Shown here: positions 1 through 35,056 of the stretch, piece after piece
Numbering within the stretch: position 1 is the first letter of the stretch
Layout: the number at the start of each line of letters is the position of its first letter
Notes under the pieces: generated by a model
Database searches by the model: none
Told to the model about the DNA's origin: nothing
The model's input: the letters and a program-made list of their open reading frames with translations, nothing else
Program-made: the position numbers and the translations under genes
IMG/VR virus record: IMGVR_UViG_3300042564_002819
Span: 186,001 to 250,000 of that record
Length of the DNA: 64,000 nt
Strand: one strand, 5' to 3'

Positions 1-1
1 C

Positions 2-13699: not shown

Positions 13700-13708
13700 G
13701 GAGAACAC

Positions 13709-16256: not shown

Positions 16257-16705
16257 ACTTGTTCGAAGACATGATTCCTGCAATTGATCTCAATATAAAA
16301 GAGTTGTGGGATGCATCGAACGAAGCAGGTCAAAAAGAAATCAAAGGCGACATGTGGACTCTTAATCGCTACATCAGCAGCGTAAAAGGAAACAGAGAAA
16401 AGCAAGAGCTTGCTGTTTTTAAAACCAATGAGTATTATAATAAAAATTGGAATTCCATAGGACTGCGTCACCCAAAATTACAGTGGCAACTTTTGTGTAT
16501 TTCTGGAAATACAGGGAAAAAAGAATTCCATCCGTGGATAGGATTAAAACAAGCCAAAGGTGTAAACACTAAGGCTGTTAAATTTTTAGAAGAAATATAT
16601 CCAACTAAAAAAATAGACGAGATTGAATTAATTGCTAGAATATTTACAAAAACAGAACTTGAACAACTCGCTAGAGATCATGGCTACGAAAAAATTAGCT
16701 TTTGA
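16235..16705 (+). CDS. clamp loader small subunit (T4 gp62-like)
   Basis: LNRY.S, HP.LQW, K.FH.WI pattern; replication context. Confidence 0.5.
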   Translation: MGKNKEVDLFEDMIPAIDLNIKELWDASNEAGQKEIKGDMWTLNRYISSVKGNREKQELAVFKTNEYYNKNWNSIGLRHPKLQWQLLCISGNTGKKEFHPWIGLKQAKGVNTKAVKFLEEIYPTKKIDEIELIARIFTKTELEQLARDHGYEKISF

Positions 16706-17381
16706 TAAGCCTTTTGTATGCGAGTACTGTGGTACTGGATATGCAAAAGAAAAAACTCTTATGGTTCATATGTGTGAACAAAAAAGAAGGCACTTACAAA
16801 AGTCTGAGAAAAGAGTTCAACTTGGATATCAGACCTTTGTAAGATTTTATCAAAAATCGGCCGGACACAAGAATATAAAAACCTATGAAGAATTTTGCAA
16901 AAGTCCTTTCTACAATGCGTTTGTAAAATTTGGTTCATTTTTAAATAATGTAAAACCATTATACACCGAAAAGTATATTGACTACATTGTAACAAGCGGT
17001 GTTAAAATTGACCATTGGTGTAATGAAACACTTTATGAAAAATATGCTGTAGATTTAATAATGAAAGAAAATGTTGAAACAGCATTGGAAAGATCTGTTA
17101 ACACTATGATAGAATGGGGCGTAGCTCACAATGCACCTTGGAATCATTATTTCAATTATGTTTCTTTAAACAAAGCTACGTTTGATATCAAAGACGGAAA
17201 GATATCGCCGTGGCTTATATTAAATTGCAAGTCCGGCAAAGAAATGTTGTCTAAATTCAATGACGAACAGTTAAATATGATATATCATATAATGAACCCT
17301 GAACATTGGGCGTTGAGATTTAAACGCCAAAGTCGGGATGTTGAACTTGTAAAAAAAGTTGCTAAAGAAGGTAATTTGTAA
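16680..17381 (+). CDS. zinc-finger protein (C-x2-C...H-x-C)
   Basis: FVCEYCG.GY.KE.TL..HMCE. Confidence 0.6.
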   Translation: MATKKLAFDKPFVCEYCGTGYAKEKTLMVHMCEQKRRHLQKSEKRVQLGYQTFVRFYQKSAGHKNIKTYEEFCKSPFYNAFVKFGSFLNNVKPLYTEKYIDYIVTSGVKIDHWCNETLYEKYAVDLIMKENVETALERSVNTMIEWGVAHNAPWNHYFNYVSLNKATFDIKDGKISPWLILNCKSGKEMLSKFNDEQLNMIYHIMNPEHWALRFKRQSRDVELVKKVAKEGNL

Positions 17382-17936
17382 TTGGACGTTGACATAGACT
17401 TCGGTGATAGAGACGTTGTTCTCTCTAAAATTATGCATCATGTTGCTAAACTAGAAACCGGTAAAAAACATAATACTGGAATTTATGTTACTCCTATTCC
17501 TCACAATCCGATTACTAATATATCTACAATAGATTATAAAGATGCTGAAAGTAGAGGATATTTTAAATTAGACTTTCTTAACGTTTCATTATATAAGAAT
17601 GTTAAAGATGAATCGCATTTAATACATCTATCTAAAAAAGAACCAATGTGGGAATTGTTAGAACACAGCGAAGTGGTAGATCAACTATTTCACATTTCGG
17701 GTCACAGTGACATTTTAAAGAAACTAAAGCCCAAGTCTGTTTTAGAATTAGCATGTGTTCTTGCTATTATAAGACCTGCCAAGAGACATTTGTTAAACGA
17801 AAGCTGGGAGACTATACATCGTGAAGTGTGGACTAAACCGTCTAATGAACAATACTATTTTAAAAAATCTCATGCAGTGTCTTATGCATTAGCTGTAGTA
17901 GTTCATTTAAATTTGCTTTGTGAAAGCTTTACTTAA
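17382..17936 (+). CDS. miniature DNA polymerase III alpha (DnaE)-like protein
   Basis: DVDIDF, H.TGIY, KLDFL, LA.IRP, FKKSHA.SY in only 184 aa; TTG start. Confidence 0.75.
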   Translation: MDVDIDFGDRDVVLSKIMHHVAKLETGKKHNTGIYVTPIPHNPITNISTIDYKDAESRGYFKLDFLNVSLYKNVKDESHLIHLSKKEPMWELLEHSEVVDQLFHISGHSDILKKLKPKSVLELACVLAIIRPAKRHLLNESWETIHREVWTKPSNEQYYFKKSHAVSYALAVVVHLNLLCESFT

Positions 17937-18297
17937 CTTTTTTTATTAATTGAACGCTTTTGCGTTTTACTCTTTTTAGTGCAAGATTATTAAGATTAAC
18001 ACACGGGCCTATTACAATTTTAACATCTTTACTATTCATAGTCATCATACAATATCTTAGAGAGTCTATCTCTCGTCTTAAAAAGATGTTTATAGGAATC
18101 AATCTGTTTGACTCCCACCACCAAATTTCCCCAAGATCAAGCAGTAATCTTTTGTGGTCTTCGGTTTTTAAATTTGTGTATACAAACATTGTTGTAACAT
18201 ACTGATCTTGGTTTGAGATGATGCCGACGTATTCGCTGCCGCCATATGCAACCACACTTACGTAAGGGAATTGGTGTTCTATTTCTTTTAATAACAT
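17929..18297 (-). CDS. hypothetical protein
   Basis: 122-aa ORF (WWWESNR.IPI). Confidence 0.6.
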   Translation of the reverse strand: MLLKEIEHQFPYVSVVAYGGSEYVGIISNQDQYVTTMFVYTNLKTEDHKRLLLDLGEIWWWESNRLIPINIFLRREIDSLRYCMMTMNSKDVKIVIGPCVNLNNLALKRVKRKSVQLIKKVK

Positions 18298-18332
18298 TCT
18301 TGCAATAAATATAATATAGTTAAGGATTCGGT

Positions 18333-19127
18333 ATGCAACTAGCCCCTAGATATTTAGTCAACGAGAGAATAAATGTTATTACAAACGATGCCGGATTCTT
18401 TGTGGAGTATAGACCTGTGTATAGTAGAACCTTAAATGTGTATAAAAACATCGATAATACAATATCGTTTAGATTATTAAACGCAGATCAAAAACCTGTA
18501 CCAATAACAAACGGTGTTCCGTATATTGTAATATTTGATGAAAATCAAACAAAGATTCTAGAAAGAGAATGCACTGTAACTGACGACGGTTCTACAACAG
18601 CAACTAGAGGAATGTTTCAAGTTACTATAACAGAAACAGACATGCTGGATATAAAACAACAGTATTTACAATACAACATTTATATGTTAAATTCAAATAA
18701 TACAAAAACAGTTACATATGCAGGAAGAAATTTTTCAAGTGCAGGAAGAATCTTTTTAGATGCAGGAGCATACCCTGGACCAAAAGGCAGTATAGAAATC
18801 ACAAACTTTTTTGCCGAAGGACTATATTGGGTTGCAGGATCTGACACAGAAGACAAAATATCTGCCGAACCAGAAATCAATGGTGCAACTGCTTTACATA
18901 CTGTTGCAATCTACAACGACGGATATGCAGGCAATGTTGAAATACAAGCAACATTAGATAATCAACTTTCTATGTCAAGCAACTGGGCAACTGTTAGCAC
19001 TATCACACTAACTGGCGACGAAACAGAACCTGTGCCTGCTAACTTTAATGGATCATTCACATTCGTAAGATTTAAATTTAACAACGATCCAACAGCGACA
19101 ATTACTAGAATACTTCTAAGAAACTAA
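18333..19127 (+). CDS. probable virion structural protein
   Basis: Beta-rich, T/N-rich; ATAAATA late-type motif at ~18305. Confidence 0.5.
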   Translation: MQLAPRYLVNERINVITNDAGFFVEYRPVYSRTLNVYKNIDNTISFRLLNADQKPVPITNGVPYIVIFDENQTKILERECTVTDDGSTTATRGMFQVTITETDMLDIKQQYLQYNIYMLNSNNTKTVTYAGRNFSSAGRIFLDAGAYPGPKGSIEITNFFAEGLYWVAGSDTEDKISAEPEINGATALHTVAIYNDGYAGNVEIQATLDNQLSMSSNWATVSTITLTGDETEPVPANFNGSFTFVRFKFNNDPTATITRILLRN

Positions 19128-19162
19128 TTGACATTGAGATTCTAAAATGCTAGTATACTGAC

Positions 19163-20155
19163 ATGAGCATCGTGTCAGAAACAATATCCTCTTTTCTGCC
19201 GTCTAAGCGTAAACAAACGCCTAGTGGATGGTTGTCATTTAACGGTCCTTGTTGTGTACACAACGGTACTTCTGCTGATAACAGAATGCGGGCTGGTATT
19301 ATCGAAGAAGGTGAATCTGTATCCTACCACTGCTTTAACTGCGGATACAAAGCTTCGTGGCAACCCGGTCGACACATTTCTTTTAAACTAAAACAGTTAA
19401 TGATCTGGCTCGGTGTACCAGACGATGCTATTAACAAACTTGCAATAGAAGTTCTTAAAATTAACGAAGGTGTTGAAACACAGTATCGTTCAATTGAACT
19501 GCCAACTTTTGAAAGTGTTCCGTTACCAGAAAACGCTGTAAAAATACATGACGATCCCTGCGATGTTTCAACACAGTTAACCGAAGTTAAAGAATACATG
19601 TCCGGACGAAAACTCTGGATAGACGAAGGGTATGAATACTACTGGAGCTCTAGTTTAGCCTACAGAGATAGATTGATTATTCCTTTCTACTATGAAGGAA
19701 GAATTGTAGGGTGGACTGCTAGAACAGTAAAGTCTGATAAAAAACCAAAATACATTACAGAATCACAGCCGGGATTTGTTTTTAACTTAGATGAACAAAG
19801 ACCGCAAAAAGTATTTTGTATTGTAGTTGAAGGTCCTATTGACGCTATACACATAGACGGTGTTGCACTTATGCGGGCCGAAATAAACGATCAACAGGCA
19901 ATGTTAATTGATCGTTTAAACAGAGAAGTTATAGTGTTGCCCGACAGAGACAAAACAGGTGCAGCACTGATCGAACAAGCAATTGATCGCGGGTGGTCAG
20001 TATCTATGCCTGATTGGGCACCAGAAATCAAAGACGTAAATGATGCAGTTCTTAAATACGGTAGACTATATACACTGTATAGTATTGTTTCGGCAGCCGA
20101 AACATCTCCTTTAAAAATTAGATTGAGAGCGAAAAAATGGTACGTAAATTTGTAA
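19163..20155 (+). CDS. DNA primase (T4 gp61-like)
   Basis: Zn finger (CC.H...YHCFNCG), RLIIP, TOPRIM VEGPIDA, PDRD, KDVND; sigma70-like TTGACA...TAGTAT upstream. Confidence 0.9.
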   Translation: MSIVSETISSFLPSKRKQTPSGWLSFNGPCCVHNGTSADNRMRAGIIEEGESVSYHCFNCGYKASWQPGRHISFKLKQLMIWLGVPDDAINKLAIEVLKINEGVETQYRSIELPTFESVPLPENAVKIHDDPCDVSTQLTEVKEYMSGRKLWIDEGYEYYWSSSLAYRDRLIIPFYYEGRIVGWTARTVKSDKKPKYITESQPGFVFNLDEQRPQKVFCIVVEGPIDAIHIDGVALMRAEINDQQAMLIDRLNREVIVLPDRDKTGAALIEQAIDRGWSVSMPDWAPEIKDVNDAVLKYGRLYTLYSIVSAAETSPLKIRLRAKKWYVNL

Positions 20156-20253
20156 ACTTCGTAACTTGGCCTTATCGATATATTCGCGATGAGTTAGCTT
20201 TAAGAAAAAAAATTAAAGAATTGCGTAAACGTGATCCGTTCATATACAAATGA
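20137..20253 (+). CDS. small protein (38 aa, ...ELRKRDPFIYK) coupled to carbamoyltransferase
   Basis: Overlaps primase end and shares ATGA with 20250. Confidence 0.55.
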   Translation: MVRKFVNFVTWPYRYIRDELALRKKIKELRKRDPFIYK

Positions 20254-21734
20254 AAGTATGGGGTATTAGTGCAAACAGTCACGACGCTGCTCTGGCTGTT
20301 TTTGATAAAAACACACAAGGTAAACTAACACTGGAATTTGCTAGTCACAGTGAACGTTTCAGCGGAATAAAAAATGACCCGCACCTAAATGCTGAGATGA
20401 TTTCTTATGCAGCCAAAAACTATGGCAAACCAGATCGAGTAGTTTGGTATGAACAGCCTTTTAAAAAAACCATGCGACAATTTCTTGCCGGGCAAGGTTG
20501 GAATTATCAAGAAAACAATATACGAAAGTATTTGAAAAAATACAGCATAGATGCTCCTATTTCCTATGTGAGTCATCATCATGCCCACGCCGCAGCCGGT
20601 TATTATACCAGCCAGTTTGCTGATGCAACTATTATTGTGATAGACAGCATCGGCGAGTTTGAAACAATGACCATATGGGAAGCCGAAGGCACAACTCTTA
20701 AAAAGAAGTTTTCTCAAGGTTATCCTAACAGCATCGGATTGTGGTATAGTTCAATGACCGATCGTGTTGGTTTAAAAGCCAACGAAGACGAATATATCCT
20801 AATGGGCATGGCCGCATACGGAAATCCGTTAAAACATTATTGGGATATAACCGGAGACTTTTTTAAGTCATTTGGCAATGAATACGATATCAAAATCGAA
20901 TTTGCAAAAAATTTACACCGAGGTTGTAGAGATTGGCGTCCACAACTGAGAAGTCAACAAGACTATTTCAACATTGCTGCTGCTACTCAAGAAGTATATG
21001 AAGCACTGTTATTAAACATCAGCAGTTGGGCATTAAAAAATTGTAAATCAAAAAACCTAGTTCTCATGGGCGGATGTGCTTTAAACTGCAAAGCAAATTC
21101 TCGAATTAAAAACCATTGGGACAATGTATGGATAATGCCAAATCCGGGTGACGCTGGCAGTGCAATAGGTGCAGTGCTTGCACACTATAAACAACCTGTT
21201 GAATGGCCTGGACCTTATTTAGGATTCAACATCAATCGCCCTTACCCGGTTGACTCACTGATAAGAGAACTTAAAAGATCTGGCATAGCAGGTGTAGCCA
21301 ACGGTCGTGCTGAATTCGGCCCACGAGCTCTTGGCAATCGCAGCTTGCTTGCTGATCCACGCGGCCCTACCATCAAACATCGTGTAAACGAAATCAAAAG
21401 ACGTCAGCAGTTTAGACCTTTTGCTCCGGTTATACTGGCGGAGTTTGCTGAAGAGTATTTTAGTGGACCGGTCAGTTCTTATATGCAGTATACTGCCGTC
21501 TGCAAATTTCCGGATCAGTTTCCAGCTATTGTGCATCGAGATGGCACCAGTAGAGTGCAAACAGTTTCAGCAGCTGACAATTCTGGATTGAGACAACTGC
21601 TGGAACAGTGGTATGCAGAAACCGGCTGTCCTATGCTGCTAAACACCAGTTTGAATATCAAAGGACGACCTATGGTTAATACCTGGGAAGATGGCCAAAA
21701 ATTTGCTAGATATTATAATGTTAATGTTTATTGA
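20250..21734 (+). CDS. carbamoyltransferase (NodU/CmcH/TobZ family)
   Basis: HDAA, ERF...K, HH.AHA, GGCALN, PGDAG, EFGPRALGNRS, RPFAP, H.DGTSRVQ, LNTSLN. Confidence 0.95.
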   Translation: MKVWGISANSHDAALAVFDKNTQGKLTLEFASHSERFSGIKNDPHLNAEMISYAAKNYGKPDRVVWYEQPFKKTMRQFLAGQGWNYQENNIRKYLKKYSIDAPISYVSHHHAHAAAGYYTSQFADATIIVIDSIGEFETMTIWEAEGTTLKKKFSQGYPNSIGLWYSSMTDRVGLKANEDEYILMGMAAYGNPLKHYWDITGDFFKSFGNEYDIKIEFAKNLHRGCRDWRPQLRSQQDYFNIAAATQEVYEALLLNISSWALKNCKSKNLVLMGGCALNCKANSRIKNHWDNVWIMPNPGDAGSAIGAVLAHYKQPVEWPGPYLGFNINRPYPVDSLIRELKRSGIAGVANGRAEFGPRALGNRSLLADPRGPTIKHRVNEIKRRQQFRPFAPVILAEFAEEYFSGPVSSYMQYTAVCKFPDQFPAIVHRDGTSRVQTVSAADNSGLRQLLEQWYAETGCPMLLNTSLNIKGRPMVNTWEDGQKFARYYNVNVY

Positions 21735-23190: not shown

Positions 23191-23694
23191 CTAGCTGAGA
23201 TACAAACGCATCTGCACTGAACGAATCACTGGTCTAGTGCTGGAAGGATATCTTGGGTGCGGTGCTAGATCCAACACAACACCGAACCCAGATTCGGTAT
23301 AGGGCACAGCCCCCGAGATGCCCCAAGTGTTGTTTGCTGCCCCATAACGTTGTACAGAATCATAGCTGTCGCTGGCTAGGTTCTTGCCCAGCAAACCGTT
23401 GAAATACAGTTGCACCACAGAGTCACAGATGCGATTCAATCTCAACACATGTGTTTCCACTTCAATGCCCAACACTGTACCAGATTCAGTGATGCCAAAA
23501 CCACTGAACTGCAAACTGTTGCCACCGTACACATTCACTGCTGACTCCGCAGCAGACGTGCCTACTCCATAAAGAGGTGCTACAGAAATCAATTTTGACG
23601 GGCGATCCAATACAGAATCTCCATCGGTGTAATCTATTTCGTTTTGAGTTAAAACTGCGACCTGTTGAGGTCTATACCATTGTGTCCATGCCAT
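23191..23694 (-). CDS. hypothetical late protein, possibly structural
   Basis: ATG 4 nt after GTAAATA motif on minus strand. Confidence 0.55.
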   Translation of the reverse strand: MAWTQWYRPQQVAVLTQNEIDYTDGDSVLDRPSKLISVAPLYGVGTSAAESAVNVYGGNSLQFSGFGITESGTVLGIEVETHVLRLNRICDSVVQLYFNGLLGKNLASDSYDSVQRYGAANNTWGISGAVPYTESGFGVVLDLAPHPRYPSSTRPVIRSVQMRLYLS

Positions 23695-23856
23695 ACGGTA
23701 TTTACCACAGGCCCTGGCCGCGAAGCGGTGCGTAGCAAATTTTTTAAGCAAATTTTTTACCCTATAATATACTCAGTTAACGGTAGAACAACAGAAAATC
23801 TACTGTGCCAGCGACCAGAGTACTATTGCAACGTAAAATCGAAAAAAATGTAAGAC

Positions 23857-23905
23857 CACGTCATACGGCCCCGTATGACACGTCGTTAGCCACCGTATGA
23901 CACGG
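23857..23905. repeat. CCGTATGAC repeat and palindrome; left arm of 19-bp inverted repeat with 41299-41317
   Basis: GTCATACGG-CC-CCGTATGAC palindrome plus a further CCGTATGACAC copy. Confidence 0.8.
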
Positions 23906-23931
23906 TCTTGATTTTTAGCTCATTTTATATA

Positions 23932-24171
23932 TTAGACTACACGTTGTATAACAATGTTCGACCCACTGTAGCGAAGCAGGTAGAGTGTTATAGCACTGTC
24001 TGAACCATGACTCACTGACAATGCTGCCCGACCGGATTCGGGCATTGGGCAAACAGTGAATCCTAGACTTTCAAATTGTGCAGCCACAGGCCGGAGTATC
24101 AGTGCATGTAGAGCACGAGTATAACTGGAAGCCGTAACAGCAGGATCTACTGAGATGTGCCACGTTGCCAT
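23932..24171 (-). CDS. hypothetical protein, paralog of 24173..24418
   Basis: Shared TW.I...F...GFTV.P...V.H...SAIT pattern. Confidence 0.55.
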   Translation of the reverse strand: MATWHISVDPAVTASSYTRALHALILRPVAAQFESLGFTVCPMPESGRAALSVSHGSDSAITLYLLRYSGSNIVIQRVV

Positions 24172-24172
24172 G

Positions 24173-24418
24173 CTAGTCTGCTGACTCTGCTGTTATTTGT
24201 ATACTGCTGTTATCCCAAGACAGCATAAACACTGTGATAGCACTGGCTCGACTGTGCTGTACTGTAAACTGTCTACGTCGATGAGGATTGTAGTAAGAGT
24301 CCACTGGAGGCAGCACGGTAAACCCATGTTTTAAAAATGTTTGTTTAGCATATTCAATGCTGATGTTTTGATCTGACCATATATTACGAATATGAATCTG
24401 AATGTTCCAAGTGTACAT
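24173..24418 (-). CDS. hypothetical protein, paralog of 23932..24171
   Basis: Tandem paralogy. Confidence 0.55.
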   Translation of the reverse strand: MYTWNIQIHIRNIWSDQNISIEYAKQTFLKHGFTVLPPVDSYYNPHRRRQFTVQHSRASAITVFMLSWDNSSIQITAESAD

Positions 24419-24474
24419 ACAAATAAACTAACACAAACGTAGAGCAAGGTCAACCTGCCCTACGGGCAGTACCG

Positions 24475-24760
24475 GTACCCCGGAGGGGTACTCGTATGAT
24501 AAAAAAATTTGCTGCAAAAAAAATTACAGGAGTACTTACAGTACCACGGTGGTCAGTTTTTGGCCCAAGGGGTTCCTGGGTTGTAAAAAAATTCTGCCGA
24601 GAAAATTTATATAGAAGTACTTACAGTTTCAGGGTGGTGATTCGGCAACCCCAGGTTTGGCGTAGCGTGGGGGAAAGATTTGGCTGCCGCTGCGTTAAAA
24701 ACTGTGTCAAGCATAAAACGCATACGACCCCCCCGAGAAAAAAATATTTTTTTTATTTTA
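24475..24760. repeat. noncoding block: GTACCCC/GGGGTAC hairpin, ~85-bp imperfect direct repeat with A-tracts, C7 run and A/T tract
   Basis: AGTACTTACAGT at 24531 and 24616, each preceded by AAAAAATT.TGC and followed by GGTGGT. Confidence 0.65.
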
Positions 24761-24829
24761 CTATACGACACTTGACAAAAGTATTTTTGTTAGTGCAAGC
24801 ACAGCACTTGCACTAACAGTTAGCTTATG

Positions 24830-25192
24830 TTACGCTGCGTGTTGTTGCTGTGCAACACTAGCGTTTTTGTATGCTTGCAACACTTGCAAAGCACTATGCA
24901 AGCAAAAATTAGTGTGTTGCTGTGCATACTTTTGTTTGCTTTGTGCAACAAGTATTGCAGCATTAATTGCGTGTTGCATGTTGTGCTGTGTTGCACATTT
25001 GCAAACATGTGCTGTGCAAGTGCAGCGTGTAGCATTGTTTGCTTGTGCAGCATAGTGCATGTTAAGCTGCATAAGTGCAACACTGTGCTGCACATAAGCT
25101 TTTGTTGCATTGTATTTGTAATAGTTAGCTTTTGCAGTGCTGTTATGCTGCGTTTGCTTTTTTGCGTAAGTGTTAAGCAAGTTGTTAAGCAT
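24830..25192 (-). CDS. early protein lacking Asp, Glu, Gly, Pro and Trp
   Basis: 120-aa ORF with promoter upstream and hairpin (24791-24815) downstream. Confidence 0.6.
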   Translation of the reverse strand: MLNNLLNTYAKKQTQHNSTAKANYYKYNATKAYVQHSVALMQLNMHYAAQANNATRCTCTAHVCKCATQHNMQHAINAAILVAQSKQKYAQQHTNFCLHSALQVLQAYKNASVAQQQHAA

Positions 25193-25229
25193 GTTGTGCT
25201 ACTTTGCTGTTTGTGTTGCTGTTACATAC

Positions 25230-25258
25230 TGTTTACAGTATTGCGTTAGCTAATGCAA
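25230..25258 (-). promoter_or_regulatory. sigma70-type promoter TTGCAT-N17-TAAACA
   Basis: 17-bp spacing; same architecture as other early promoters. Confidence 0.55.
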
Positions 25259-25336
25259 GTAAAATAACGCATAATAAAATTGCTTTATTAGTGCAAACAA
25301 CGCAATATTATTACGTGCTTTTTTTGCATTTTGTTG

Positions 25337-25365
25337 TTGCGTTTGCTGTGCTGTGCTGCTATACA
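25337..25365 (+). promoter_or_regulatory. sigma70-type promoter TTGCGT-N17-TATACA with extended -10 TG
   Basis: 17-bp spacing, upstream of 25403. Confidence 0.6.
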
Positions 25366-25402
25366 GTATGCATACAGCAACTAACAGCAAAGTGTAACAC
25401 AC

Positions 25403-25705
25403 ATGCAATACGCAAACTATGCTAGCGTTGTTAACGCTATTAACTGTTATGACGACACTGTGCTTCGTGAAGCACAGCAGCTTGCACTAGCTATAGCACA
25501 GCACAACGAAGACTACTGCACAGACAGCTTGTTTGACGCAGTTAACGAAAGCGTTGACGACTTGGGTATGCAAGCTTGTTGGCAGCACACGGAAATGCGT
25601 AGTGCAATTGAACAGTATAACGACGAGTGCTACAGCACAGCAATTTACGAGCTTGTAATTGCAATGCTAAAGCGTAGCTCAGCATACGAGCAAGCGTTTA
25701 CGTAA
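25403..25705 (+). CDS. acidic early protein, candidate Ocr-like DNA mimic
   Basis: ~16 D/E versus 4 K/R; TDSLFDAVNESVDD and AIYELV resemble T7 Ocr segments. Confidence 0.5.
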   Translation: MQYANYASVVNAINCYDDTVLREAQQLALAIAQHNEDYCTDSLFDAVNESVDDLGMQACWQHTEMRSAIEQYNDECYSTAIYELVIAMLKRSSAYEQAFT

Positions 25706-25730
25706 CGCAAGCTTTTAAAAAAAACAAGCA

Positions 25731-25754
25731 CAGTGCAAGTGTAAGCTTGCACTG
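25731..25754. terminator. AGTGCAAG/CTTGCACT hairpin between convergent genes
   Basis: CAGTGCAAG-N6-CTTGCACTG; family copies at 24791, 25829, 26099, 26515, 26786. Confidence 0.5.
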
Positions 25755-25864
25755 TGTCGTCGTTTGTGCAGTTTGTTATTTTGTTATTTTGTTATTTTGG
25801 GGCGGGCCGGGGGATAGAACTTGGGGTAGCTAGTGCAAGCATTACACTTGCACTGGCTGTTTTT

Positions 25865-26047
25865 TTACAGTTTGTTTATGCGGCGCAGGCAGTAGGCGAA
25901 TTGACGTGCAGGACGGGTGCGAGTGCTAATAGACATGCTGTTAGCATAGTATTCGTAAACTTCGTTATAAAGGGCTCCGGAGCTGTCAAGTTCTTTTGTT
26001 TGTTTGTATACTGCAAGTTCCTGCTTTGCTGCGTTGCTAAGTTCCAT
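25865..26047 (-). CDS. small early hypothetical protein
   Basis: AGGA SD; promoter TTGCAC-N17-TATACA at ~26080-26108. Confidence 0.55.
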   Translation of the reverse strand: MELSNAAKQELAVYKQTKELDSSGALYNEVYEYYANSMSISTRTRPARQFAYCLRRINKL

Positions 26048-26162
26048 TTTGCAGTTTCCTTTTTGCTGTTTGTTTGTATTGTATAGCAGCTTGTATTAGC
26101 TAGTGCAAGCATTATTTTACTTGCACTAGCAATTAACAGCGGGGCCTTAGTAGACCCGTTTG

Positions 26163-26462
26163 TTACAAAACACAGTATTCCGTTTGAGGAACAAGTTCGT
26201 TTTCCTCAATGTAACGCAACACGCTAACAAACTGCTCCCGCATGTCAGTGTCAAAATACACAATTGTCGTGTGCAGTTCAACAGCGTCGCTCGTTGCAAT
26301 AAACGAAGCAAGTGCGTCAGCAGCACGGGCAATGTCGTTTGCAAACATTGCAATGTGTTCCTGAGGAATTGCAGTTGCAAAATAGTTTTGCGTGTAAGCT
26401 GCAATAGCGTCACGCATTGCTTTTACAGTGTAAAACTTACGCAGCACAGTCATTTTACGCAT
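26163..26462 (-). CDS. early hypothetical protein
   Basis: GAGGG SD; promoter TTGCAC-N17-TATACA at ~26496-26524. Confidence 0.6.
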   Translation of the reverse strand: MRKMTVLRKFYTVKAMRDAIAAYTQNYFATAIPQEHIAMFANDIARAADALASFIATSDAVELHTTIVYFDTDMREQFVSVLRYIEENELVPQTEYCVL

Positions 26463-26553
26463 TGTGTATTCCCTCTATGCGTTGCTTATGTGTACTGTAT
26501 AGCAGACAGTGTCGGCTAGTGCAAGCACAAAATGCACTTGCACCGGCAGTTTT

Positions 26554-26733
26554 TTAGTCTTGCAATTGCAATTGCAATGTGTTAAGCTTTTGCAGTGCAG
26601 CGTCTTCTTCTGCTAGTGCAAGCTTATAAACTGCATAGCTGCCGCCTTGCATAGCTTCTGCTCGGCACTGTGCAGTAAGTGCTACAGCGTTTGCGTAACG
26701 CTTTTGTGCATTAGCAAGTTTTTTGTTTTGCAT
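26554..26733 (-). CDS. small early protein (59 aa, MQNKKLANAQKRY...)
   Basis: GGAG SD; promoter TTGCAC-N17-TATAAA; below ORF-track cutoff. Confidence 0.55.
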   Translation of the reverse strand: MQNKKLANAQKRYANAVALTAQCRAEAMQGGSYAVYKLALAEEDAALQKLNTLQLQLQD

Positions 26734-26828
26734 AGCGTGTGCTCCGTTTTGCTACGTTATGCGTTGTTTATAGCAGCTTGTGTCTGCTAGTGCAAGCATT
26801 ATTTTACTTGCACTAGCAGTTTTTTGTG

Positions 26829-27020
26829 TTACGCTTCGTCTGCGTCTTCCTCAATTTGCTCCAACATAGCCGTAATGTCGTAGCCAACCGTCTGCATTGC
26901 AATAACAATCTGTTTCGCTGCTTCGTATGCATCCCAGCTTTGCACTTCGTCAGCATCCGTGCTGTCGTATGCATTAGCAGCAATTTGTGCAATGTTAGCA
27001 AACAGTTCTTCGCGTGTCAT
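26829..27020 (-). CDS. small acidic early protein
   Basis: GAGGG SD; TTGACA-N17-TATACA promoter. Confidence 0.6.
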   Translation of the reverse strand: MTREELFANIAQIAANAYDSTDADEVQSWDAYEAAKQIVIAMQTVGYDITAMLEQIEEDADEA

Positions 27021-27110
27021 GTGCAGTCCCTCTTGTGTTGCCCTATGTGTTATGTATAGCACAGCACACAGCACTTGTCAAGTAAAAAGTGCTGTGTGCT
27101 GCAAGTTTTT

Positions 27111-27377
27111 TTAAATATTACACGCTATAAGTGCTTCGTCAAGCATGTCGTGTACTGCACTGTCGTACGCATAGTTATACTCCGTAGCAAAATCCACGTC
27201 GCTGCTGCACATAATTGTGTCATATTTGTTAATGTTATACTGTTTAAATGCAGCAATTATGTCGTTTGCACTATTACAAAAAACGTCAACAGTTTTATTA
27301 ATACGCAGTACAATTGCGTTTGTAGCGTCGTCAAGCATTACAAAAACGTAATTAGTATTTGCTACAGTGTTTTGCAT
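27111..27377 (-). CDS. early protein (no Gly, Pro or Trp)
   Basis: GAGGAG SD; TTGCAA-N16-TATAAC promoter. Confidence 0.6.
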   Translation of the reverse strand: MQNTVANTNYVFVMLDDATNAIVLRINKTVDVFCNSANDIIAAFKQYNINKYDTIMCSSDVDFATEYNYAYDSAVHDMLDEALIACNI

Positions 27378-27504
27378 ATTGTGCTCCTCGCATATGCTGT
27401 GTTGCTTACAAATACAGTTATACACTATGCAGCACAGTTTGCAAGTAACGTTTTGTTACAGTTTTAGTGCGTGTTGTAACAATACGTTATCTCCTACCTC
27501 TGCC

Positions 27505-27852
27505 TCACTCTACACCCCAGCCACAGTATTTCTTCCCACGCACAATATCAAAAAACTCTGCACCTGCAACCGCACCAATCCAGTCGTAAATGTAGTCTCG
27601 TGCTGCCGTGTCCATCTCCCACAGCCGGTCTTCAACCAATCGCCAATCACCTTCGGCTAGCAGCACACAAACATCAAGCCCAGCACTGGCATCTCCCAAC
27701 AGCATAGCTCGCATAGAACGATCCGCTGCCCAACGCTCCTGGTCCGTCCGCATCTTTTCCATTACCAGCAGTTCCACTTGAAGTGCAAGTTCCTGCCAGT
27801 TGATGTGGACAGTGCCGGTAAGAGTGGGTTCATTTACAGTTACGATAGACAT
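27505..27852 (-). CDS. early hypothetical protein
   Basis: GAGG SD; TTGACC-N17-TATACA promoter. Confidence 0.6.
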   Translation of the reverse strand: MSIVTVNEPTLTGTVHINWQELALQVELLVMEKMRTDQERWAADRSMRAMLLGDASAGLDVCVLLAEGDWRLVEDRLWEMDTAARDYIYDWIGAVAGAEFFDIVRGKKYCGWGVE

Positions 27853-27900
27853 CTGTTTGTCCTCTGTGTTGCTGTCTGTTGTATGCTGTATACAGTGTTT

Positions 27901-28074
27901 TCAGCTTGGGGTCAACCCCAAACGATCGTTTAGGATTGAATTGATTTTACGGAGGATCATGTCTTTGATGCATGGCGGCGCAGGATCGTCCTCCAGCAGC
28001 ATAATTGCATCCAGCAGTTGCATATCCGTGCAGGCCTCAAGACGAGCCAGTTCTTCAGCCATTTCTTTTTGCAT
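27901..28074 (-). CDS. small early protein (57 aa)
   Basis: AGGAG SD; TTGCAT-N17-TATAAC promoter. Confidence 0.5.
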   Translation of the reverse strand: MQKEMAEELARLEACTDMQLLDAIMLLEDDPAPPCIKDMILRKINSILNDRLGLTPS

Positions 28075-28132
28075 TGCAGTTTCTCCTGTGCTGTGCCGTT
28101 GTTATACAGACTGTAGGAGCCGAATGCAACCG

Positions 28133-28405
28133 TTATTTTCGCCGGCCTGGGAACTGAATTACTGTGGCAGATTCTGCCACATCTGCTGGCATCAGATCAC
28201 TATACAGCGGGGCCGAATCCAGTGTATAGTCTTCAACAGCCATCAGTTGTGCTGTAACATCAAATACCGTTTCCAGGTTCTCTGGGTAGCTGTCGGTACC
28301 GTATGAGTCGATGGCTGTGTTGACCGCAGCACGTAGAGCTCGCAGCACAATCTCAGGTGCAGTGTAGCTCTCAAGAATTCTTCGCAGTTGTTCAGTAGGG
28401 TCCAC
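28133..28405 (-). CDS. acidic hypothetical protein
   Basis: AAGGA SD, GTG start. Confidence 0.55.
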   Translation of the reverse strand: MDPTEQLRRILESYTAPEIVLRALRAAVNTAIDSYGTDSYPENLETVFDVTAQLMAVEDYTLDSAPLYSDLMPADVAESATVIQFPGRRK

Positions 28406-28462
28406 AATCTGTTTCCTTGGGTTGGAGGTGTTCGCCTACTGTGGGCGAACACCCATTGTTGA

Positions 28463-28807
28463 TTAGTCCAGACGCGAGCCAGCGTAGGCAGTGAAGCCAT
28501 AACGCTTCAGCACTTCTGCGGCAGCACGAGCACCAGCTTCTTTGGTTTCGATGTTTTGTGCACCGTGACGGCTTGGGTTCCAGCATTCGTAAGCCTTGCC
28601 GGTCCAGTCTTTGCGGAAGCCCAGAGCTTCGATATCGCGACGTTCAATCTTACCATCGCGGGTGTTGCCCTTGTGCTTGGGATAGATCGTAACCCAAGCA
28701 AAGCCACACATGCCGCGGTCTACTCCGCCCATTTGTTCAGCAAAGAACTGGTTGGCAGCATCACGGGCAGCAGTTTCAAACTCTTCGCGGATTGCAGTGG
28801 TGTCCAT
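28463..28807 (-). CDS. phage protein (CGFAWV motif)
   Basis: AAGGAG SD; own promoter. Confidence 0.65.
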   Translation of the reverse strand: MDTTAIREEFETAARDAANQFFAEQMGGVDRGMCGFAWVTIYPKHKGNTRDGKIERRDIEALGFRKDWTGKAYECWNPSRHGAQNIETKEAGARAAAEVLKRYGFTAYAGSRLD

Positions 28808-28931
28808 CAGTGGTCTCCTTGTTTGCTCTATGCCTAATGTATAGCAGATCACAGTCTCGGGGTCAACAGGAAAAATAACCCGCACAATCAGATTGTGCAA
28901 ACCGTTTCGCATATCGTATACAGCGGGGCCA

Positions 28932-29237
28932 TCAGTTGTGGTAGGTCTTGGTTACGCGGAGAACTTCGCCATAGCAGTTGATCTCGTAGAGGTATGTCCA
29001 ATGACGACGATATTCAACTTCCTGACGGCATACACGGTAAGGATCTGGCTCTTGGTAATAAACCACAGGCGGCGGATATTCGGTTTGTGGATACACCACC
29101 TGCGGGCGTGGCGCCTTGAGTGCATCTACTACGATTGCACCCACAATGAATCCGCCGAGGATCTTTTCGAAGTCACCTGCGTGAACGGGTGCAGCAAATC
29201 CCAGTGCCACCATTGAGGCAAGAATCATTTTACGCAT
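28932..29237 (-). CDS. secreted or membrane hypothetical protein
   Basis: Signal peptide (VHA), glycine-zipper-like segment. Confidence 0.6.
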   Translation of the reverse strand: MRKMILASMVALGFAAPVHAGDFEKILGGFIVGAIVVDALKAPRPQVVYPQTEYPPPVVYYQEPDPYRVCRQEVEYRRHWTYLYEINCYGEVLRVTKTYHN

Positions 29238-29272
29238 GTTCGGTCTCCTTGTATGCTCTTACAGTATATATC

Positions 29273-29476
29273 TTAAGAGCAGATGTCAACCCTCTTTGAA
29301 CGAGCAAACCTAATTAGATCTCTGTCGACGGAGGTCAATCTTTGGACATCGTATCCAAAAGGTGTATTGACACTTTCCAATCGAGCTGCTAAGTTGGCTG
29401 CGGCATTAGCAATGGTGTCGTTCGAGGAATTCTCAGCTAGGTCTCTGAGATCTTGCATTATACTGTATAAGGTCAT
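29273..29476 (-). CDS. hypothetical protein
   Basis: ORF in early array. Confidence 0.45.
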   Translation of the reverse strand: MTLYSIMQDLRDLAENSSNDTIANAAANLAARLESVNTPFGYDVQRLTSVDRDLIRFARSKRVDICS

Positions 29477-29526
29477 TTTCTTCTTTTTGTTGACGGGCAG
29501 TTTAGTGTCTTGCCCAGGACACCGTC

Positions 29527-29700
29527 TCATTCGAGAGGTTCAGTGCAGTCGCAGTCCACAAACTCGTAGCGGCCTGCGTCAATCTTGGCTAGCCATTTGC
29601 CAAATCCTGTAGGATCTTCCAGTGCAATAATCAGTAGCACTATCGTAAACAACAGGAAAAAGCTCAGCAGCATATCGCGGATGTCGGCAAAAACGTTCAT
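29527..29700 (-). CDS. small membrane protein (57 aa)
   Basis: One hydrophobic helix; overlaps stop of upstream gene. Confidence 0.45.
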   Translation of the reverse strand: MNVFADIRDMLLSFFLLFTIVLLIIALEDPTGFGKWLAKIDAGRYEFVDCDCTEPLE

Positions 29701-29876
29701 TGGCATTCCTCTAGATTATAGTGTTCACAGTCAGCAAGGTACTCAGGATCCAATTGGGAAGCTAGGAAATTTTCGTGTGCAGCCCGGTCGGCCAATGCTT
29801 CGGCCGGTGAAGTTAATACAGGTACGTCGCCACAAGCAGCTAACGTCAGTGCGGAAATCAACATCATCCACTTCAT
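29697..29876 (-). CDS. small lipoprotein
   Basis: MKWMMLISALTLAAC lipobox; own promoter. Confidence 0.55.
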   Translation of the reverse strand: MKWMMLISALTLAACGDVPVLTSPAEALADRAAHENFLASQLDPEYLADCEHYNLEECQ

Positions 29877-29939
29877 CTGCAGGGCCCTTTCTCTTGCTCT
29901 GTATCTTTTTATAGCATCAAGCGACACTGAGGTCAACCA

Positions 29940-30308
29940 TTACCAGACGTGAATAGAAAGACTTTCTGTGTTGTGTTTCCAGTTCATTTCTTTGCCGCCT
30001 GCTGATTCAATGCTTTTGCGGAATGCCGTGCTGTCACGACGGCTCTTAAGCACATACCGTTGAACTTTGACTTCGGTGTGTGCAGGACGACGCTTGGTTG
30101 CAGGACGTGCAGTTTCATAGACTGCACCGTAGCTGGCAAAGTAGTCCTTGACACAGTCAACAACAGCGGCTACGGCTGTTTGGTGTGCAAACGATCCAAA
30201 CACATCCGGATGACGGTCCATGGCTGCTTCTGCACGACGATTGATGTCTTCGATAGCAAACCAACTGGAGCCGACACTGTGTGTCTCTTTGGTTTCTTCC
30301 TTAATCAT
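29940..30308 (-). CDS. hypothetical protein
   Basis: AGGAG SD. Confidence 0.55.
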   Translation of the reverse strand: MIKEETKETHSVGSSWFAIEDINRRAEAAMDRHPDVFGSFAHQTAVAAVVDCVKDYFASYGAVYETARPATKRRPAHTEVKVQRYVLKSRRDSTAFRKSIESAGGKEMNWKHNTESLSIHVW

Positions 30309-30588
30309 AGTAATCTCCTACTAAGATGTATGTTGCAGGTGCACATTCTTCATTATCATTAGCATAGAGCAATCCGTCCTCGCGGTCAAGGAAAAAGTCC
30401 TTGCTTTCAGGATCGATATCATCTACATCAACGAATTCAACCTGGCCGAGATAGGCAAAATCGTCGAGGCACCCGCAGCTTTGAACAAAGCGATACACTC
30501 CAGGCTTATCAACAGTCTTGCCGATAATATCACTGGCTTCTCTCTGCGAGAATTCGTTGAGGTAGTCGATGCTGACTTTAATCATCAC
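30301..30588 (-). CDS. acidic hypothetical protein
   Basis: Coupled ORF. Confidence 0.55.
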   Translation of the reverse strand: MMIKVSIDYLNEFSQREASDIIGKTVDKPGVYRFVQSCGCLDDFAYLGQVEFVDVDDIDPESKDFFLDREDGLLYANDNEECAPATYILVGDYYD

Positions 30589-30728
30589 AGCTCTCCCTTG
30601 CGATGCTTTTGTTTGCGGGTGTATTTGGTTTTGTCACGCACAGTGCGGACGCGGAACTGAGGTGTGGCAAGTTCACGTGCAACAGGGTTGCGACGCTGAA
30701 TGTCTTCTGCACGGATTTGGATTTTCAT
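30585..30728 (-). CDS. ArfA-like small basic protein (47 aa)
   Basis: NPVARELATPQFRVR...KYTRKQKH; GAGGAG SD; own promoter. Confidence 0.55.
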   Translation of the reverse strand: MKIQIRAEDIQRRNPVARELATPQFRVRTVRDKTKYTRKQKHRKGEL

Positions 30729-30773
30729 CGTGTTGCTCCTCGTTTGCCCTATACCGTTTATATAGCATTGAGT

Positions 30774-30980
30774 TCAGTTGGTGTCAACCATTATCTTCTC
30801 AAGTTCGTCGACGTGATACATATAGCGTTGGCGAGTCTTGAACCTTTTATCAAGCCGCACACGAAGCCAACCTTCAACAAAGCCTTCATCTTCAACAGTG
30901 CCCAACAGGCCCTGGGTGGGACGAAGTGCTGGAGCACGGACCTTCACACGGTCTCCAATTTGGATTGTCATCTCTTTCAA
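30774..30980 (-). CDS. small SH3-like protein
   Basis: IGDRVKV...GTV...VRLD. Confidence 0.45.
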   Translation of the reverse strand: MKEMTIQIGDRVKVRAPALRPTQGLLGTVEDEGFVEGWLRVRLDKRFKTRQRYMYHVDELEKIMVDTN

Positions 30981-30983
30981 CCT

Positions 30984-31241
30984 CTATTTGAACTCTACTC
31001 TAACCAAATCGCCTTGTGGATTGAACATGGTGCAGACTCTGTTGCCCACCGCCTTGACAGTGGTACGAGTTTGCCACCACAGTTCGGCTTCTGCCTCAGT
31101 GTCTACCAACACCGCATTCCACTCCAACGGTCCACCAGGATTATCTGCTGGTGGTTTGGAGAACTGTGTTCTTACTTGCCACATCTGAATTCTCCGTGTT
31201 GCCCTATGCTCGGTTATAGCATAGGGCAAGGGTGGTGTCAA
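30984..31241 (-). CDS. hypothetical protein (true start may be downstream)
   Basis: ORF; a promoter lies within its annotated 5' part. Confidence 0.45.
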   Translation of the reverse strand: MTPPLPYAITEHRATRRIQMWQVRTQFSKPPADNPGGPLEWNAVLVDTEAEAELWWQTRTTVKAVGNRVCTMFNPQGDLVRVEFK

Positions 31242-31825
31242 CCTCTGTCTGTGTAGAAGATGTGATTGTCGATACGCACCACACGTTCAAAACTCTTGGC
31301 CCAAGTGGGCTTGACAGATGCAGCGTGGAAGTAGGTCGCTCCCTCAGTGGGATCACGTTCTACTCCGTATGACTGTAGGACTTCTTCTGCAACGACTTGT
31401 GCAGTTGCCCAAGCGGCTTGGTCCTTAGGTCTATCGCTCTTGCCATCGTGTGTCCAGGAGAACTGTTGATCTTCCCACACTACAGCACAGATGGTATCGG
31501 GGAAGTCCGAGTCCATTACTCTGTTGAGTGTAACCCAGCCTACAAACTCCTGTCCTACCTTGCTCTCGCCACGAGATTCAAAATAGACATTCAGTGCTAG
31601 GCAGTGTCGGTCTTCTTTGCTGACCTCAGCAAAGATGGCTTCGGGATCAGGGCGTGGCTGCATAGGTACAGGCACATGAACAATCCGTTCTACCACTCTG
31701 TCGATATACACTACTTCTTTGGGTTCGACGGCCGCTTTTGCCTCATCTGCCGTCAAGTAAACCACTGCCATTGCAACGATCACGGCTGAAGAAGCAACGC
31801 CGCCGATGATGGTACTCATCCTCAT
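31238..31825 (-). CDS. cell wall hydrolase (SleB/Hydrolase_2 family)
   Basis: CLALNVYFESRGE, V.LNRV, FP.TIC.VV, QFSW, GATYFH, I.NHIFY; N-terminal anchor. Confidence 0.9.
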   Translation of the reverse strand: MRMSTIIGGVASSAVIVAMAVVYLTADEAKAAVEPKEVVYIDRVVERIVHVPVPMQPRPDPEAIFAEVSKEDRHCLALNVYFESRGESKVGQEFVGWVTLNRVMDSDFPDTICAVVWEDQQFSWTHDGKSDRPKDQAAWATAQVVAEEVLQSYGVERDPTEGATYFHAASVKPTWAKSFERVVRIDNHIFYTDRG

Positions 31826-31947
31826 TGGATTCTCCTTTTTGTCGTTCGTGTAATAGTTATACTGGTATTGCTCGGAGTAGTCAACGTATATAATAGGAGT
31901 CAGCGAGATCTTGCTGGTTCCTAAGCAGGTTCTTGCTTAGCCTAGAA

Positions 31948-32406
31948 TCAGAAGTTAGGCTCGTAGTCACCGAACTCTTTATGCGTCAGCATCACTTGTT
32001 TATACAGTTGCGCCGCAGTAAGCCCACGATGCAGTCGTGCTAGACGGCTCATCGCAACTTGAATACGCTCGTCTGTGGGCTCTACAAAGCCGTCGTCGTC
32101 CGCTGCTACAGCCGTCTGTGCAGGCTTTACAGCACGTTCTTTGGCTGCTTTAGGCTTAGGTGCAGCGGCAGGCTCTCGGGCTGCTACACGCTGCAACAGT
32201 GCTCGTGCATCAGGTGTGCAAAAGGGCGACTCCAGCAAGTGTGCAGCGGCTGCCTCTCGAGTCATTGCAGTGGGCAGCTGGATCAACTGGATGTCAGTGT
32301 TCTCGCAGCGTTCCAGCATAGCAATACGACCCGCAAGATCGTTTGCAACACGGAACTTAAGCTCACCATTTTCCTTGCTAGTGCCAGCAACAGTGAAAGT
32401 CTTCAT
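31948..32406 (-). CDS. phage protein, paralog of 33678..34145
   Basis: TFTVAG.S..NG..K.R.AN...R..ML......I....LP.AMT..AA..HL. Confidence 0.65.
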   Translation of the reverse strand: MKTFTVAGTSKENGELKFRVANDLAGRIAMLERCENTDIQLIQLPTAMTREAAAAHLLESPFCTPDARALLQRVAAREPAAAPKPKAAKERAVKPAQTAVAADDDGFVEPTDERIQVAMSRLARLHRGLTAAQLYKQVMLTHKEFGDYEPNF

Positions 32407-32417
32407 CTTGCATCTCC

Positions 32418-32540
32418 TTAGTCTGCATACTGAGCGTTGAACAATGCTGCCTTGAAGGTGCCACCGTGAACAATCTTGTTGTCTGCTAGGCGTTTGCCGA
32501 ACCAAACATTACCTGCATTCCAGAACGTCCAACCTTCCAT
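32418..32540 (-). CDS. small hypothetical protein (40 aa)
   Basis: RBS block identical to that of the next gene; own promoter. Confidence 0.45.
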   Translation of the reverse strand: MEGWTFWNAGNVWFGKRLADNKIVHGGTFKAALFNAQYAD

Positions 32541-32641
32541 CTTGCATCTCCTTGCGTTATGCACTGTGTATAGCAGAATCTTTCTGCCAGTGCAAGAGAA
32601 TAATTCCTCTTGATCCGGTGAGTTGTTTGTGTTATACAACT

Positions 32642-32745
32642 TGTGAGGCCGGAGAGTTCCGTACGGGAGGGCACGGAGCCCTGAACCTATGGTTTAATCA
32701 TTAAACCATTCAGTCAAGGGGAAAGGGTGCATTGCTGCACCCTTG
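32642..32745 (+). ncRNA. candidate small structured RNA, copy 1
   Basis: TTGATC-N17-TATACA promoter, GTGAGGCC start, CTGAACCTATGGTTTAATCATTAAACCA hairpin, terminator-like stem 32722-32743; related copy at 41020. Confidence 0.45.
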
Positions 32746-32752
32746 TTCTCGT

Positions 32753-33022
32753 TCACATCTGCCAATAAGCTTCGCTTGCGGGCGACATGTAGTTGGGCGT
32801 ATTCACCGACTCCATGTATGACTGTCCAGTCATCAAGTTAGTGCGTTCTACTTGACGCTCGATGTTGTCTTGGAAGTAGGTGTATTCAGCAACCGCATAG
32901 TCGTTCCAGTTCAGGTAGCGTGTCACATGACGCTTTGCTGCCTGCTCAGTTGCAAAGAACTCGTCGCCGTTTGCACGACGTGCGGTACGAGTAGTATCTT
33001 TACGGTAAACCACATAAGCCAT
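32753..33022 (-). CDS. phage hypothetical protein
   Basis: AAGGAG SD; NLMTG..Y.E..NTP....P.SE.YW C-terminus. Confidence 0.65.
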   Translation of the reverse strand: MAYVVYRKDTTRTARRANGDEFFATEQAAKRHVTRYLNWNDYAVAEYTYFQDNIERQVERTNLMTGQSYMESVNTPNYMSPASEAYWQM

Positions 33023-33084
33023 TGTGTCTCTCCTTGTTGCTTACAGTTACACAATATAGAAAAAGCGATAAGGGGTCAAGCCCC

Positions 33085-33588
33085 TTATTTCCACTCTTGT
33101 CCATCGGCACGGAGTGCAACAATACTGTCCATTGCGAACGTGCGGATAACAACCTTGTTCTCAAGTCCGCCTTGCTCGCCTTCACGCTTTTCCGGAAGAC
33201 CATCGATTGCCGATTCGTCAACCGGTTTTCCGTCGAGCAGGTATTGCACGTCGCCAGCACGGAGGAAGATTACTTCCAAGTAATGAGTACCTTTGTGTTC
33301 CACAAACGGCGTGCCTGCAATACGCTCGCCCCATGCACGAGGGCTGAGTTCAAAGCCGGCAGGGTCCTTGCCTTCTTGCTCCAAACGACGCAGCACCATT
33401 GCGTTATATGCACTGCCGTTGGTGTTGCTGAAGCACATAACAGTGGCACCAGTCATTGCCTTTGTAACACGGCCCTGCTGCGGGTTCTTCTTGCCACCTT
33501 TGAGCACAACCGAAGTCACAGTGTCCATGCCAACGAACGTGCCGCCTGCAAGTGTGTCGAACGCAGTCTTTACAGTTTGGAAGTCCAT
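33085..33588 (-). CDS. phage hypothetical protein
   Basis: AAGGA SD; own promoter. Confidence 0.65.
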   Translation of the reverse strand: MDFQTVKTAFDTLAGGTFVGMDTVTSVVLKGGKKNPQQGRVTKAMTGATVMCFSNTNGSAYNAMVLRRLEQEGKDPAGFELSPRAWGERIAGTPFVEHKGTHYLEVIFLRAGDVQYLLDGKPVDESAIDGLPEKREGEQGGLENKVVIRTFAMDSIVALRADGQEWK

Positions 33589-33677
33589 TGCGTAGTCCTT
33601 TCTGTTTGTCTATGCTCTAGTTATAGCACCTAAGAGAAAGCGGTGCAAGCGTTATTTTGCCTGTACCGCCATTTTTT

Positions 33678-34145: not shown

Positions 34146-34353
34146 TTTACAGTTCCTTTGTGTGTGTTTGTGTGTGTTTCTGTTGTTTAGTATTAGCATC
34201 ATTGCTAACACAAGTCTAGTTCTTTTTTTAGGCAGCCTGCAATTTTTTTGCGTCTTGCTTGCTGTCTATGTGTTGTTTATAGTTCCTATCGTTGTGTGTT
34301 GCAACCGAAAAGTTGTCTATATCTAAACTTTTTTTCGGTTGCATCTTTTTCTA

Positions 34354-34827: not shown

Positions 34828-34900
34828 GTGCATCCTCTTTTGCTGTTTGTGTTTACAAGTTAGCAGAATCAAAAAGCATGGTCAACCTAATAAATGAAAA

Positions 34901-34932
34901 TGCCCTAGCAGGGAGGGCATCCTGCTAGGGCA
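34901..34932 (-). terminator. intrinsic terminator-like hairpin
   Basis: TGCCCTAGCAGG/CCTGCTAGGGCA 12-bp stem followed by a T-run on the minus strand. Confidence 0.5.
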
Positions 34933-35056
34933 GTAAGCGAAGCGTTGAGAGGGCACCAACAACTTCGAAAGTGACAGGTTGACGAGGGCAGTCTTCCTGT
35001 CTTATACGCCCGAACAATGAGGGCAACTGCCCGGGCGACTTGACCGTAGTGCGGAG

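Follow-up and report, generated by a model that had tools for sequence, protein, structure and literature searches.

We analyzed a 64,000-nt window (bases 186001-250000) of a 330,024-bp IMG/VR jumbo-phage record, focusing on a small island around ORF 24830-25192 on the - strand, hereafter ORF120. The DnaB-type helicase of this phage is 52% identical to that of Pseudomonas phage PA5oct and 62-82% identical to those of many uncultured aquatic phages, while no DNA similarity to cultured phages was detected. KDO-8-phosphate synthase-like (KdsA-like, DAHP_synth_1), OmpA-family and CMP-KDO synthetase-like (KdsB-like) genes at 14294-16256, next to a carbamoyltransferase (20250-21734), together with sigma-70-like promoters and GGAG ribosome sites, point to a Gram-negative host. 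G+C jumps across the island, from 31-40% (1-20000) to 47-52% (28000-40000), and the high-GC block lies mostly on the - strand and holds tRNA-Arg(TCT), tRNA-Met and tRNA-Leu(TAA) at 36344-36630. The features of the island are as follows (YC denotes CC or TC, and GR denotes GG or GA):

24830..25192, - strand: ORF120, a conserved basic protein of 120 aa written in 15 amino acids
24775..25450, - strand: stretch without CC or TC on the - strand (the ORF120 sense strand), that is, without GG or GA on the + strand
24734..25678, + strand: stretch without CC or TC on the + strand, with one exception at 25465, covering the predicted antisense RNA of ORF120 and the + strand gene 25403-25705
25230..25258, - strand: sense promoter-like element, TTGCAT (25258-25253), 17 nt, TAAACA (25235-25230), with the same layout as the promoters of the neighboring - strand genes
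25193..25222, - strand: CA-rich leader without a Shine-Dalgarno sequence (ACAGCAACACAAACAGCAAAGTAGCACAAC, then ATG), with a core that is invariant in relatives, and about 80% identical to the leader of gene 25403-25705
24788..24818: palindromic hairpin TGTTAGTGCAAG/CTTGCACTAACA (12-bp arms, 100% complementary) just after the stop codon, which ends the sense-strand zone and carries the -35 box of the antisense promoter-like element
24808..24836, + strand: antisense promoter-like element, TTGCAC (24808-24813), 17 nt, TG-n-TACGCT (24828-24836), overlapping the invariant Ala-Ala-stop codons
25300..25325, + strand: weak hairpin (ACGCAAT/ATTACGT) followed by T7, a candidate terminator of the antisense RNA, about 110-135 nt upstream of the ORF120 ATG
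25403..25705, + strand: divergent gene for an acidic, proline-free protein of 100 aa, with a promoter-like TTGCGT-N17-TATACA (25337-25365) and a YC-free sense strand
25728..25757: bidirectional terminator-like hairpin where the + unit and the - gene array converge
25799..25825, - strand: non-coding C-rich patch (ccccaagttctatcccccggcccgcccc on the - strand, GGGGCGGGCCGGGGG on the + strand) at the 3' end of the - array
26665..27626, - strand: 962 nt without CC or TC on the - strand, holding small acidic, proline-free genes (27111-27377, 26829-27020, 26554-26733), each with a Shine-Dalgarno sequence and a hairpin-embedded promoter
26103..26814: three of six GTGCAAG-loop-CTTGCAC hairpins, starting at 26103, 26519 and 26790, in which the 3' arm supplies TTGCAC 17 nt before TG-c-TATA(A/C)A, upstream of each - strand gene

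ORF120 is built from A, Q, N, L, T, K, H, Y, V, S, C, M, I, R and F, has a pI of 9.6, and contains no D, E, G, P or W. These five residues make up 24% of the residues in the long ORFs of this phage, so a 120-aa protein without them has a chance probability of about 1e-15. The cause is in the DNA: the 676 bp of 24775-25450 contain no GG, CC, GA or TC on either strand, a stretch unique in the genome (log10 P = -54.8). In the whole genome, only these four dinucleotides show anomalous gaps, of 757-1210 nt against an expected maximum of 170-320, while the other 12 behave normally. The original prediction of a 120-aa protein with a restricted alphabet, its own promoter-like element and a downstream hairpin is confirmed, as are its statements that neighbor 27111-27377 lacks G, P and W and that 26163-26462 lacks G and W. 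It requires two corrections: TC is excluded as well as GA, GG and CC, and in the neighboring genes the exclusion applies only to the sense strand.

Conservation of ORF120 and origin of its reduced alphabet

Because TGA and TCA cannot occur in the zone, three long ORFs overlap there (140, 120 and 96 aa), and the 140-aa + strand ORF is the exact codon-for-codon shadow of ORF120. ORF length is therefore weak evidence (a Markov null gives P = 0.03 for a longest ATG ORF of at least 120 aa), and one could suppose that the frame is a neutral mutational footprint rather than a gene. Comparative analysis refutes this for practical purposes. We found 22 homologues of 111-128 aa at 64-91% identity, in which indels are in whole codons, and C57, C59, C64, C66 (RCTCTAHxCKC) and H16, H36, H62 and H93 are invariant among the 23 aligned close sequences. 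For eight DNA sequences the median dN/dS is 0.17, and variable columns number 48, 43 and 97 of 111 at codon positions 1, 2 and 3, a pattern that only the ORF120 frame fits. A profile search of 1.8 billion representatives found 11 more distant members, and a search with the leader found three more ORF120 loci in metagenomes but nothing in IMG/VR. Single-protein scans of IMG/VR with ORF120 and gene 25403 found nothing, as did a tblastn search of ORF120 against cultured phages.

To ask whether the reduced alphabet reflects the protein or the DNA, we compared these homologues at the nucleotide level (loci of relatives are designated by L numbers). Five of eight homologues have 0 YC and 0 GR, although pS is 0.34-0.77. 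Back-translating ORF120 with the codon usage of the genome gives on average 13.9 YC and 5.2 GR, and never zero for both in 20,000 trials. In contrast, the distant homologues at L137 and L138 lie in normal DNA (39 and 23 YC, 14 and 13 GR, respectively), L138 has an ordinary AAAGGAG ribosome site, and their proteins contain D, E, G, P and W. Where all four unconstrained proteins have D, all nine constrained ones have N, and where all four have E, six of the nine have Q; these are the one-base changes that remove GA. The constraint also governs synonymous sites, codon junctions and non-coding flanks, which excludes codon- or tRNA-level explanations and selection on the protein alphabet itself. 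The original inference of a nucleotide-level constraint strong enough to reshape the protein is thus supported, and the alphabet is a by-product. Cytosine itself is not depleted: C content is 19-22% against a genome value of 18%, C is moved to AC and GC contexts (observed/expected 1.3-3.1), and C-ending codons are preferred where legal (AAC 79 versus AAT 13, CAC 44 versus 13, TGC 32 versus 3; AGC is also preferred), indicating selection against a word rather than decay of cytosine.

The function of the protein is unknown. The AlphaFold model (pLDDT 72) shows predicted helical hairpins with a small beta knuckle at the four Cys, but this knuckle is an insertion that is absent in distant members of the family. 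Fold searches of the model in PDB, BFVD and AFDB clusters found only generic helical hairpins, with two uncharacterised proteins matching at probability 0.99, and the ESM Atlas had no usable hit. PDB profile hits to zinc-ribbon ribosomal proteins are not significant (E 0.03-0.16). Pfam and PHROG searches of ORF120, of all island genes and of genes of relatives gave no informative hit, and an Rfam search of 23500-28500 found nothing.

Strand specificity of the dinucleotide exclusion

The exclusion is strand-specific. In the - array (26665-27626), YC is missing from the sense strand of the small genes and returns gradually in the two distal genes, 26163-26462 and 25865-26047; gene 25403-25705 is YC-free on the + strand. 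Relatives show the same pattern. L063 has 2077 nt without a single YC on the sense strand of six small genes, each preceded by TTGACA-N17-TATATT and GGAGCGTAC before the ATG, and L084, L110, L112 and L114 have similar arrays, always on the sense strand of the called genes. These gene families stay YC-free at a synonymous divergence of 0.47-0.66. The 204-aa YC-free gene L084:652-1266 (+) belongs to a family of 391 metagenomic proteins, many from Tara samples, in which 119 of 120 homologues, down to 58% identity, have no proline. Two further proteins with reduced alphabets lie in DNA of relatives that is YC/GR-free on both strands: one of 199 aa without E, G, P or W (L114:6463-7062, +), which uses the same promoter and CA-rich leader as ORF120, and one of 123 aa without D, E, G, P or W (L116:2459-2830, +). 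Neither has family hits.

The both-strand zone always accompanies ORF120, even where all its neighbors are ordinary (L108, L113), and an apparent convergent antisense promoter offers an explanation. The 3' arm of the hairpin downstream of the stop codon reads TTGCAC on the opposite strand, and exactly 17 nt further lies TG-n-TACGCT; this arrangement (TTGCRC-N17-TGnTACGCT) keeps its spacing in seven loci although the spacer sequence differs, whereas unconstrained distant homologues have a Shine-Dalgarno sequence and no such promoter. In the minimal loci (L108, L110, L113 and L136), the sense-strand zone runs from the -35 box to the end of the hairpin, 54-57 nt past the stop, and the antisense-strand zone runs from the hairpin to 95-152 nt upstream of the ATG, where a hairpin plus T-run sits, although runs of N interrupt L108 and L112 just upstream of the gene, so that their upstream boundaries could not be read. 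The zones match the predicted units in these loci, but in the window they overshoot by 100-230 nt: the - strand zone extends about 190 nt upstream of the ORF120 promoter, and into ORF 27505-27852. The promoters and terminators were read by eye and fall below the threshold of a consensus scan (the sense promoter-like element is conserved in four genomes), and no transcript has been observed, as no public RNA run holds this phage; both transcripts are therefore inferred. We interpret the locus as a fully overlapping sense/antisense pair in which both RNAs are YC-free. A YC-free antisense RNA forbids GG and GA in the mRNA, which would explain the loss of D, E, G, P and W codons, the missing Shine-Dalgarno sequence and the invariant CA-rich leader, while neighboring genes, transcribed in one direction, merely lose proline. 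In this reading the rule is "no CC/TC on any transcribed strand" rather than a symmetric DNA rule.

The island is accessory: the closest complete relative (357 kb, helicase 83%) has no zone and none of its genes. The six GTGCAAG-loop-CTTGCAC hairpins are confined to 24793-26814 in this genome, and because they are palindromes each offers a TTGCAC -35 box in both directions; a scan of IMG/VR for this hairpin gave only two unrelated chance matches. PA5oct (MK797984.1) has only short patches (150-310 nt) free of all four dinucleotides, at 264906-265148, 267253-267562 and 277055-277231, with the same TGCA/ACG-rich look; one holds tandem TTGCAA-N17-TATAAT promoters before a tRNA cluster, and two overlap small annotated CDSs (EST35_0386, EST35_0432). 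PA5oct relies on host RNA polymerase (PMC7318152). In one relative, an 835-aa protein with a Sigma70_r1_1 domain lies beside the helicase (L112:8356-10863), so some members of the clade may carry their own sigma-like factor.

Candidate readers of the excluded dinucleotides

We are confident (roughly 0.9) that ORF120 is a genuine gene and that a strand-specific nucleotide rule has been held through near-saturated synonymous divergence. The identity of the reader being evaded is inferred, and our leading hypothesis, termination factor Rho, remains tentative (about 0.4). The six primary binding clefts of Rho bind 5'-YC (PMC12360218), so a YC-free RNA offers no primary-site ligand, and Rho probably silences untranslated, antisense and foreign RNA. 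These transcripts, the untranslated antisense RNA above all, would then be completed before the phage has disarmed the host. Consistent with this, the target is YC, not C, and the untranslated antisense strand is the stricter one, with GR at 0 in L112 and L113, where the sense strand has 4 and 3 YC. In addition, YC-dense non-coding patches sit at the 3' ends of YC-free arrays: the patch at 25799-25825 lies in the second densest 40-nt YC window of the genome (window 25791), and L110 6400-6850 has 35% C and 20 YC per 100 nt. The densest window (27611-27650, + strand) also lies at an edge of the - strand array, but inside ORF 27505-27852. However, one or a few YC should not create a rut site, so Rho evasion predicts depletion rather than the observed absolute absence. 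Moreover, translated genes with good Shine-Dalgarno sequences are just as strictly purged (0 in 2077 nt), the same promoter cassette in L063 also drives ordinary YC-rich genes, and the four highly expressed ncRNAs of PA5oct are not YC-depleted.

Zero tolerance is better explained by a host defence enzyme that attacks cytosine in a 5'-YC context, such as a deaminase acting on the non-template strand of heavily transcribed DNA, or an endonuclease with that preference, because every site would be a hit. This alternative predicts the same strand and the same link with bidirectional transcription, would allow zones to extend somewhat upstream of promoters, where negative supercoiling opens DNA, and fits the probable TC/CC context of APOBEC3-type and DddA-type deaminases. 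We nevertheless consider it less likely than Rho: no bacterial antiphage enzyme with this specificity and mode of action was found in our literature searches, YC-dense patches sit right beside the zones inside the same transcription units, and the footprint of C-to-T erosion is absent, since C content is normal and TT (1.05-1.28) and CT (0.86-1.13) are barely raised (observed/expected). Self-immunity to a phage factor that binds or cuts nucleic acid at YC/GR and shuts down host expression appears unlikely. ORF120, a basic Cys/His protein and the one gene always inside a both-strand zone, could be that factor, and T4 Alc and RegB may be precedents in kind, acting on sequence or base features that part of the phage's own nucleic acid lacks. 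However, most genes of this phage contain YC and GR at normal density and would be hit too, the Cys knuckle is missing in distant family members, and no fold or family match points to a nuclease or nucleic-acid binder.

Rules acting on duplex DNA, such as avoidance of restriction sites, of CRISPR PAMs (type I-F CC, type I-C TTC) or of the target motif of a phage DNA modification, are very unlikely. The ORF120 zone is indeed symmetric, many restriction sites and PAMs appear to contain GG/CC or GA/TC, and the zones include non-transcribed promoter DNA. However, the zones of 26665-27626, L063, L084, L110 and L112 are purged on the sense strand only, which a duplex-reading enzyme would not produce; a 3-kb immune patch does not protect a 330-kb genome; and the I-E PAM AAG/CTT is abundant in the zone. 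No TGT/DpdA, C5-methyltransferase or TET gene was found in the phage genome, although the TET search is inconclusive because its control was silent. UV photoproduct avoidance was also rejected, because the strand is wrong and TT is not avoided.

A more speculative, and doubtful, extension of the Rho hypothesis is that the phage writes its first-needed genes and a regulatory antisense RNA without any 5'-YC, solving the bootstrap problem of expressing counter-measures before the host is disarmed, and that ORF120 is such a counter-measure, for example an anti-termination or anti-Rho factor. If our reading is right, a host factor reading a two-letter word can force a virus to rewrite whole genes, and the resulting 15-letter and nearly proline-free families are natural experiments on how much of the amino-acid alphabet a fold needs. 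Kilobase-long, strand-specific absence of CC/TC would also be a simple signature that could flag immediate-early or counter-defence genes in uncultured phage genomes. Our literature searches for dinucleotide avoidance, YC and Rho in phages, or restricted alphabets in phage proteins found nothing comparable.

Comparison with known systems

It is instructive to compare the island with systems that share some of its features. Like the PeSL (promoter-early stem-loop) cassettes that appear to occur in T4-type phages (Arbiol et al. 2010), it consists of small orphan genes in a variable region, each preceded by a stem-loop and a sigma-70-like promoter, in cassettes that repeat and seem to move genes around. 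Here, however, the -35 box lies inside the palindromic stem, so that each hairpin can serve both directions, and a dinucleotide purge does not seem to have been described for PeSLs. As in sense/antisense gene pairs such as type I toxin-antitoxin loci, a small ORF is fully overlapped by a predicted convergent transcript with its own conserved promoter-like element, but the ORF120 protein is larger than typical type I toxins and is not hydrophobic.

In Rho-dependent termination and the countermeasures of phages (lambda N/Q antitermination, P4 Psu), the ligand of the Rho primary binding clefts is exactly the motif excluded here, the RNAs concerned (foreign, antisense, poorly translated) would be the usual prey of Rho, and C-rich patches follow the purged units. 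Known phages, however, appear to use trans-acting proteins or RNA elements to stop Rho (no Psu homologue was found in this genome, in a search whose control was silent), whereas the immunity proposed here is purely cis-acting, written into the transcript by removing every YC at the price of recoding proteins. Finally, in motif avoidance by viruses, such as restriction-site avoidance in phages and TC or CpG depletion in animal viruses facing APOBEC3 or ZAP, a short word is likewise removed from a viral genome, apparently to escape a host reader. Here the avoidance is absolute rather than statistical. It is confined to a 1-3 kb island, it is strand-specific and follows the predicted direction of transcription, and it is strong enough to delete five amino acids from a protein.
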